Part shown: piece after piece, positions 13,773 to 15,304 of the stretch
Layout of the letters: each line of letters opens with the position of its first letter
How positions within the stretch are numbered: position 1 is the stretch's first letter
Assembly (NCBI RefSeq): GCF_000002075.1
Contig: NW_004797287.1
Location: forward strand, 907,900 to 971,899
Direction of reading: 5' to 3'
From: Aplysia californica
Taxonomy: Eukaryota
DNA: 64,000 nucleotides
Notes under the pieces: generated by a model
Told to the model about the DNA's origin: nothing
The model's database searches: none
Seen by the model: the letters and a program-made list of their open reading frames with translations, nothing else
Position numbers and translations under genes: made by a program

Positions 13773-15304
13773 TTACAAGTCAAGCCTCTGAGGTGGCTTG
13801 ATGGTCCCCCCGAAGCTGCTGGTGCTGGTAGCTCGAGGAGTTAACGGCTGTTGTTGTAGAGGCACAGGTGGGGGCTCGCTGTGAACCACCGGAGTATTCT
13901 GTATCCGTTCGTGGTCTTGCATGGGTAGGCCTATAATTTGTTCATCCTGAGGATCAGTTGGTATGAGGGCTTTTCTGTTGCTCCATGTTGGTGAGTCACT
14001 GTTGTCCGGCTGAATGATGTATGATCTCGGGCTATGGTGTTGTTTGATTACTTTTGCATTCCGTCCCATGTCTTTGACGTAGATGTTGTCTCCAGGGTTC
14101 AAACTAAGCTTTCTGGCGAGGTGGCGCATGTTGTACTGCTTGTATATGTCTTCTCTGTACTTATTCTCCTGTTCTTGGAGAAGCACTGGATTTGGTGACT
14201 GAGGGTGTAGCTTTTGATACATGATGGGCACTTTTGTCTGCAATTTCCTGCCCATTAGAAGCTCACTGGGAGAAAATTTGTTTAGAAGAGGAGTGGCCCT
14301 GTAATTAAAAAGTGCAATGTAGGGGTCGTCAGCCTTTTTCAATAGAATTTTTTAGAGTTTGAATGGCTCGCTCAATCATGCCGTTACTTTGGGGATATCG
14401 TGGTGAGCTGGTAATGTTGGCGGAGATGAAAGAGAATGGCACGTTCTACGCAATCAAAGCCTTGAGGAAAGACGGGGTGCTGGAGGATGACGACGTGGAG
14501 TGTACCGTGATAAAGAAGAGGGTCCTCTCCATCGGCTGCAAGCACCCCTTCCTCACACACCTGCACAGCACCTTCCAGAGCAAGAGCCATCTGTTCTTTG
14601 TGATGGAGTACCTCAATGGCGGTGACCTCATGTTCCATATACAAGTCTCTGGAAAGTTTGAATTTCAACGAGCTCAATTCTATGCAGCAGAAATAGTTTG
14701 TGGCCTTCAGTATCTACAAAAGAATGGCATAATATACAGGGATCTCAAGCTGGACAATGTGGGTAAAACCGTAGTTTTGAGCAAATTTTTGGAACTGCGT
14801 ACTTGCAAATTGGGGCCCATTGTCTGAGACTATGACATCGGGTATTCCATGTGTCACTATGATGGATTTCAGCTTGATGAACACACGTTCACTTGACAGC
14901 TCTTCTAATATCCTTATTTCTGGCCATCGAGAATAGTAATCCGTTACTGCCAGGTAGTTTTCGCCTTTGAGATAGAACAACTCGGCTGCCACTCGTGACC
15001 AGGGTCGGTTCGGGAAGGAGGACGGAAGAAGTGGTTCTCTAACGTCCGGTCTCAGTTTAGCACAGATCAGACATTTTTAAATCATGTTTTCAATTTAGCT
15101 TGAGATGTTGGGCCACCAAACTAAGTTCTGCGCCAATGCTCTGCATTTGGTAATTCCGAGATGACTTTCGTGAAGCCGGTTGAGGATGTCTATTCTCAGG
15201 TCTCGTGGGATGACGATTCTATCATTGAAAAGAAGGAGGTCGTTTACAATCGTGAAATGTTGCTGGTTAGACAAATATTGCTTCAGAAGTGTGTTGGCAG
15301 GCAT
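13773..15304 (-). pseudogene. Gypsy integrase (HHCC zinc finger, DDE core, C-terminal region), broken by stops/frameshifts and by the kinase insert
   Basis: LHESHLGITKCRALA..VWWP; DYYSRWPE; SDNGPQF..F...YGFTHI | [42 protein letters not shown]. Confidence 0.92.
14411..14761 (+). pseudogene. Captured intronless fragment of a novel protein kinase C (delta/theta-type) catalytic domain, subdomains I-VIb
   Basis: [29 protein letters not shown]...HPFLTHL..TFQ...[22 protein letters not shown]...[15 protein letters not shown]...[12 protein letters not shown] is the nPKC-delta/theta signature; lacks the GxGxxG loop and everything from DFG onward. Confidence 0.93.

Follow-up and report, generated by a model that had tools for sequence, protein, structure and literature searches.

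An intron-free fragment of PKC coding sequence interrupts, in antisense orientation, the integrase core of what its structure identifies as a Ty3/Gypsy LTR retrotransposon copy in the genome of the mollusc Aplysia californica, and the event is read here as a one-off RNA-templated insertion of the templated sequence insertion type, with the spliced mRNA of a PKC gene on another contig as its template. The copy lies in a stretch of 64,000 nucleotides (contig C17:907900-971899), which is called the window and whose own numbering is used below, and the fragment occupies the following place in it:

14411-14761, plus strand (antisense to the element): intron-free PKC fragment of 351 bases, 8 of which are equally the element's, with a net gain of 343

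The integrase frame runs on the minus strand, where it reads NYGFTHI, is then interrupted, and picks up again past the insert. The break falls at position 94 of 102 of the rve profile, so that the D,D35E core is cut after its second Asp and before its Glu, and the integrase piece ending at the join matches rve over profile positions 27-94 of 102 (Pfam, E 1.7e-10). Translated on the plus strand, the interval 14411-14761 gives 117 codons without a stop and matches Pkinase over profile positions 15-129 of 263 (Pfam, E 7e-22). Five other copies of the family (C323, C22, C55, C8, and C331; 92-95% identical) read GAGCTG-GTAATGTG-GGTAAAACC at this site without interruption; the window copy has the same flanks and a net 343 extra bases, with all 8 site bases kept and none lost, and among the family copies compared it is the only one in which the PKC insert is present. 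The sequence-only reading, made from the letters of the window, had described a 343-bp interruption of the integrase after YGFTHI within the DDE core by 117 contiguous kinase codons on the opposite strand and had proposed a search for element copies with or without it; the flanks collinear with the five continuous copies, the stop-free translation with its Pkinase match, and the position of kinase sense on the plus strand and of the element on the minus strand all agree with this description.

A 154-codon open frame at 14363-14827 of the plus strand starts with an ATG in the antisense integrase, passes in frame through the entire kinase fragment, and ends in the element; it probably arose by chance, the insert being free of stops. 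The case as a whole shows that an open frame resembling a kinase can lie in a transposon without being either a gene or a transduced oncogene. Two of the sister copies carry nested insertions of their own. The C8 copy (L035:4629-7626) has one of 2996 bp with terminal inverted repeats of the CAGAGAG...CTCTCTG type and a 7-bp duplication, GTGCAAT, at a site equal to window ~14312-14318; its ends are also seen as loose read ends, and it looks like a DNA transposon. The C331 copy (L031:1533-2089) has an ordinary one of 555 bp with a 9-bp duplication, TTTTTGGAA, at a site equal to window ~14786.

The host copy covers window 13426-18364 on the minus strand, with LTRs of 122 bp that have TG...CA ends in element sense, and is flanked on both sides by the 5-bp target duplication ACGAT. 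Its domain order on the minus strand, RVT_1, RT_RNaseH_2, Integrase_H2C2, and rve, is the Ty3/Gypsy order (Pfam), and the LTRs, the target duplication, and this order together identify it as a Ty3/Gypsy LTR retrotransposon with the following parts:

13421-13425: target-site duplication ACGAT, left copy, read directly
13426-13547, minus strand: 3' LTR of 122 bp, from alignment with the LTRs of other copies
13548-13562, minus strand: polypurine tract adjoining the 3' LTR, a purine run common to the 3' ends of copies C323 and C55
13773-14412, minus strand: integrase, part past the insert, disrupted by an additional base near 14346 that four other copies lack
14762-15304, minus strand: integrase zinc-binding domain and core up to YGFTHI (Pfam Integrase_H2C2 and rve; translation)
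15507-16223, minus strand: RNase H domain (Pfam RT_RNaseH_2, E 3e-27)
16403-16672, minus strand: reverse transcriptase fragment (Pfam RVT_1, E 8e-9)
16861-18099, minus strand: gag-like open frame of 412 aa, with no Pfam match
18265-18364, minus strand: 5' LTR, short of about 22 bp on its inner side (U5/primer-binding site), from LTR comparison
18365-18369: target-site duplication ACGAT, right copy, read directly

This copy is dead on several counts. Comparison with the 5' LTRs of C8 and C55 shows a loss of about 22 bp at window 18243-18264, which takes in the innermost part of the 5' LTR and the first bases of the primer-binding site; stop codons stand around 15095-15115 in the translated integrase; and the extra base of the window copy at 14346 is absent from read contigs that cross this point. 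To the integrase of this already broken copy the insert adds a +1 frameshift.

The origin of the fragment was sought in the 927-Mb assembly of 4332 contigs. Genome-wide, the insert was matched only at its own site and, piecemeal, in contig C1090 (minus strand), where the search found three separate exons (E 6e-23 to 4e-77) and a fourth exon piece of 22 nt was located by pattern. Such values against three separate exons of one gene exclude a chance match. The parent exons correspond to the insert as follows:

C1090 89811-89638, minus strand: exon A, 174 nt, equal to window 14411-14584
C1090 88835-88744, minus strand: exon B, 92 nt, equal to window 14585-14676
C1090 88220-88158, minus strand: exon C, 63 nt, equal to window 14677-14739
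C1090 from 87383, minus strand: exon D, the first 22 nt equal to window 14740-14761

The insert lacks, to the base, the three introns of the parent (802, 523, and 774 bp, each with GT...AG ends). The exact loss of three introns across four consecutive exons argues for an origin from spliced RNA and, on sequence grounds, shows the template to be the spliced sense mRNA of the C1090 PKC gene. The earlier supposition of an mRNA source, as opposed to capture from a parent that is intronless over this span, is thus upheld, three introns being present in the gene and all of them absent from the insert. A natural antisense transcript as the template is ruled out, because the introns were removed at sense-strand GT-AG sites. 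The fragment is internal to the mRNA and extends from the kinase N-lobe to the catalytic loop; neither poly(A) nor the mRNA 3' end is found in the insert, and there is no A-run at either end.

When the four exon pieces were compared one by one with the parent, the insert showed 8 differences in about 336 nt and no indel (join base 14413 excluded), at 14475, 14507, 14513, 14545, 14620, 14629, 14719, and 14749, and identical runs of 61, 74, and 89 nt remain between the insert and the PKC mRNA. Half of these differences are silent, and the other four change the protein (V22G, M33V, E35K, and H103Q). The third of these is the alphaC Glu, for which the parent has GAG (Glu) at 14513 and the insert AAG (Lys), and so the decay that had been noticed in the reading KKRVL for EKRVL is seen directly against the parent and extends to four amino-acid changes in all. 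A C1_1 exon lies on the same strand about 7 kb upstream of the kinase exons (C1090:96846-96941), which makes the parent a PKC gene. Among solved structures PKC theta is closest to the insert (E 5e-49), followed by eta, beta/alpha, and iota, and the parent is probably a novel PKC with its nearest relation to PKC theta; no PKC delta kinase chain appears among the structure matches listed, and within the former delta/theta assignment the parent may be of either type.

The reality of the insertion was examined in Logan contigs of four runs (X2 from 2011, X3 from 2022, X9 from 2013, and X11) aligned to window 14000-15200. The left join is spanned by one contig, 14371-14584, in X2 and in X3; another X2 contig, 14555-14706, spans two exon-exon joins; and one contig, 14689-14785, spans the third exon-exon join together with the right join in both X2 and X3. 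In X9 the contigs 14371-14474, which includes the left join, and 14555-14676 were obtained. The right-join contig holds only 24 unambiguous element letters, under the 31-letter rule, and stops where its last 30 letters match other copies, as expected of a 31-word graph. The depth of the join contigs equals that of the copy's unique flank (about 20-26 versus 22 in X2; 67-77 versus 54 in X3), loose read-contig ends at 14584, 14676, and 14677 correspond to the parent's introns, and the contig marked by the T at 14401 that is private to this copy leads into the insert without a branch. A read joint that skips the 343 bases is taken as the family's uninterrupted copies and not as an empty allele; no G at 14401 is listed for the joint contigs, and in the samples aligned no insert-free allele of the window copy was seen. 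In X11 the contig is mixed and the left flank uncovered, and no conclusion was drawn from this run.

The insertion is thus real DNA, present in at least three samples of different years and studies. Misassembly had been named as a danger to the reading, and it is contradicted by the contigs of three samples that span the joins at single-copy depth; the idea that the insert is an assembly or read chimera deserves next to no credence, since nothing was found in its favour and the contigs break off at just those points at which the word graph runs into the parent gene or other element copies. At four further positions (14307, 14962, 14981, and 14984) the contigs of X2, X3, and X9, at 14981 also of X11, differ from the assembly at full depth, and these mismatches reflect errors in the assembly or else variants private to the individual that was assembled.

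Both joins fall within the octamer GTAATGTG of the element site and contain short stretches common to the element and the parent:

14414-14417: left-join microhomology ATGT, 6 of 7 with the preceding GT, 14413 being the element's A and the parent's G
14756-14761: right-join microhomology AATGTG, common to the element and parent exon D

The parent mRNA carries GTGATGTT where exon A starts and ACAATGTG within exon D. Across the left join the window has GCTG-GTA-ATGT-TGGCGG, and across the right join GGAC-AATGTG-GGTAAA, with no untemplated bases and no deletion. Microhomology of 4 and 6 nt or more at two random joins has a chance of about 2e-5. The joins overlap by five bases, AATGT, which are readable as a duplication or as microhomology. 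A plain target duplication of 5 or 4 bp, of LINE or integrase type, was rejected as the sole cause, because the parent mRNA carries the same bases beside both fragment ends. On the priming strand the site reads CACATT/ACCAG and is not T-rich.

An mRNA template is compatible with a single polarity of copying, and from the joins of the product we infer the following steps. A free 3' end of the element sense strand, ...ACCCACATT, would have paired with AAUGUG in exon D of the PKC mRNA; a reverse transcriptase would have extended this end by 343 nt, past the three exon-exon joins and as far as AUGU, which lies 3 nt into exon A; and the new 3' end, ...CAACAT, would have re-paired through ACAT with ATGT of the same element octamer, whereupon synthesis or ligation would have gone on. 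Priming by the sense strand and return to the same octamer would together explain the antisense insert, the absence of any lost element base, and the 5-base overlap. An ordinary minus-strand switch to mRNA is ruled out, as it would yield a sense insert.

As the venue of these steps an already integrated chromosomal copy under nick or break repair is slightly favoured and is put forward tentatively. At a staggered nick or break, 3' overhangs would have served as primers on the mRNA, with closure by microhomology, and the enzyme may have been a LINE-type reverse transcriptase, working in target-primed, endonuclease-independent style, or an RNA-copying repair polymerase such as Pol theta. According to Tan et al. 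2016, LTR-mediated chimeras always replace a portion of the element, and an interrupted element points to insertion into a pre-existing one (PMC5131818); the present element is merely interrupted, with nothing replaced, which favours the chromosomal venue, as does the antisense orientation, because retrotransposon-transduced genes are usually sense (PMC7264820). Further support comes from the spliced, partial, RNA-derived patches without poly(A) and with microhomology that are on record at chromosomal breaks (PMC5110952) and from the ability of Pol theta to copy RNA (PMC8195485). Against this venue, random landing in the coding part of an LTR element (few per cent of the genome) is a priori unlikely, an argument weakened by the fact that such a fragment is noticeable only where it breaks a readable frame; the marks of LINE activity (poly(A), mRNA 3' end, T-rich nick site) are absent; and the samples aligned gave no allele of the window copy free of the insert. 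Of the antisense capture by the element that the sequence-only reading had proposed, the spliced PKC RNA and the antisense placement hold, while capture by the element's own reverse transcriptase from a co-packaged mRNA is not established, as nothing of the element was replaced, and chromosomal RNA-templated repair fits the data at least as well.

The particle-borne alternative is possible if rather doubtful. It proposes that inside a virus-like particle the element's own reverse transcriptase made a double switch, from DNA to mRNA to DNA, on a co-packaged PKC mRNA during plus-strand synthesis: the growing sense strand or a discontinuity of the plus strand, ending ...CACATT, would have left the minus-strand DNA, copied 343 nt, returned via ACAT, and then been integrated. 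The insert does sit in a retroelement, a setting in which reverse transcriptase is found alongside packaged cellular mRNAs and free 3' ends of the sense strand, and with the element plus strand as primer the copy of an mRNA would come to lie antisense. LTR-mediated retroposition is moreover marked by microsimilarity of about 6 bp at the two switch points, the median at fusion points being 6 bp (PMC5131818), and both the restriction of the insert to this copy and the failure to see an insert-free allele accord with such an origin. On the other side, no report was found of a DNA-to-RNA switch in plus-strand synthesis, nothing specific was met in the literature on plus-strand switching or antisense capture, and the RNase H-driven release that favours minus-strand switching is absent when the donor template is DNA. 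The replacement seen in all described LTR-mediated chimeras and the usual sense orientation of transduced genes, set out above for the chromosomal venue, also count against the particle.

On the particle-borne course the insert must be exactly as old as the window copy, and the age of the copy, with element divergence taken as counts of its private differences, was compared with that of the insert. Over 2021 aligned flank sites, 41 substitutions (2.0%) are private to the copy, a rate that predicts 8.5 differences between insert and parent, where 8 are seen, so that insert and copy may be of equal age, in favour of the particle and against the chromosomal venue. The LTRs, in contrast, differ at 8 of 97 positions, four of them at CpG, which for a simultaneous origin predicts about 17 differences (P of 8 or fewer = 0.011) and puts the copy at about twice the age of the insert, in support of the chromosomal venue. 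The comparison of insert-parent with LTR-LTR divergence that had been suggested earlier thus gives an older copy by the LTRs and a simultaneous origin by the private substitutions; the two clocks are at odds with each other (P about 0.05), the age of the insert comes out at 0.4 to 1.9 times that of the window copy, and the dating decides nothing between the two venues.

Three further routes are each improbable. A minus-strand switch in the particle onto a premade first-strand PKC cDNA, running off its 5' end and back to the element RNA at CACAUU, would give the same product with the same microhomologies on the strand usual for retroviral recombination, and it is unlikely because it needs an extra, unobserved intermediate whose 5' end must fall at a motif shared with the element, and because the return site on the element RNA would already have been copied. 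DNA-level copying, by gene conversion or break repair, from a PKC processed pseudogene that has been lost or is missing from the assembly is very unlikely: a donor could indeed be missing from an assembly of 4332 contigs, but the genome search gives only the parent exons and the insert, and the read contigs show only these two forms. More unlikely again is the integrase-mediated insertion of a double-stranded PKC cDNA fragment. With an ATGT duplication the piece starts with TG and ends with CA like LTR ends, a duplication of 4-5 bases is readable at the joins, and the family's own integrase makes 5-base duplications, but other LTR-end features are lacking, and the agreement of the duplicated bases with the parent mRNA at either flank of the fragment (4 and 6 nt) would then be pure coincidence, with a probability of about 1e-5 to 1e-6.

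Several known systems resemble the present case in part. Like the chimeras of LTR-mediated retroposition (PMC5131818; yeast Ty1, maize Bs1, HERV-K/FAM8A1), it has an intron-free partial mRNA copy between both LTRs and short microsimilarity at both fusion points (4 and 6 here), but nothing is replaced, both switches fall in one octamer, the piece is antisense, and the chimera was not copied further. With templated sequence insertions (TSIPs; Onozawa et al., reviewed in PMC5110952) it shares a few-hundred-bp, spliced, RNA-derived patch from a distant locus, the lack of poly(A), and microhomology at the joins, and TSIPs occur in either orientation. Class 2 TSIPs typically have a microdeletion or untemplated bases and no duplication, unlike the exact join with a 5-base overlap found here; this overlap resembles the duplication of class 1 (LINE) TSIPs, yet comes without their poly(A). 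TSIPs were described in human cells, whereas the present case is from a mollusc. LINE-made processed pseudogenes likewise involve reverse transcription of a cellular mRNA from a genomic 3' end, microhomology at the 5' join, and a short duplication, but the present insert has no poly(A) and no mRNA 3' end, stopping 22 nt into exon D, and its nick site is not T-rich. Retroviral oncogene transduction also places host kinase sequence in a retroelement by non-homologous or microhomology joining that involves RNA. The transduced gene is then sense and expressed, often with the complete coding region, and the virus propagates, unlike the 117-codon antisense fragment in a single dead copy.

RNA-templated insertion and gene fragments in LTR elements are thus kinds already known, and it is the combination of an antisense piece, exact joins, and both switches in one octamer that is uncommon. 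The case represents an unusually well-resolved natural RNA-templated DNA insertion in a mollusc, with a known parent gene, three known introns that were removed, exact joins, an identified primer strand, and intact sister copies. It is a single decayed event in a dead element, with no sign of function, expression, or effect; the stretch occurs in none of the RNA runs on record, a result that speaks neither for nor against its transcription. The LTR-driven transcripts with antisense PKC RNA that the sequence-only reading had predicted may or may not be made by this copy, which is short of 22 bp at the border of its 5' LTR and primer-binding site. Given the identical runs of 61, 74, and 89 nt, antisense small RNAs could in principle target the parent PKC gene. 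If the particle-borne course were true, host gene pieces would be placed antisense in retroelements, and element transcripts or small-RNA pathways could act against the host gene; if it were shown, it would represent an antisense branch of LTR-mediated retroposition and a possible way for transposon silencing to gain host targets.

Some features were also noted in the surroundings of the element. Runs of N, masked or gaps, stand upstream of it at window 8860-9050 and 9960-10480. Just past its 5' side, at 19100-20500, lies an array of tandem or dispersed repeats of about 47 bp, accompanied by a CA/TG-rich microsatellite at 19376-19790.
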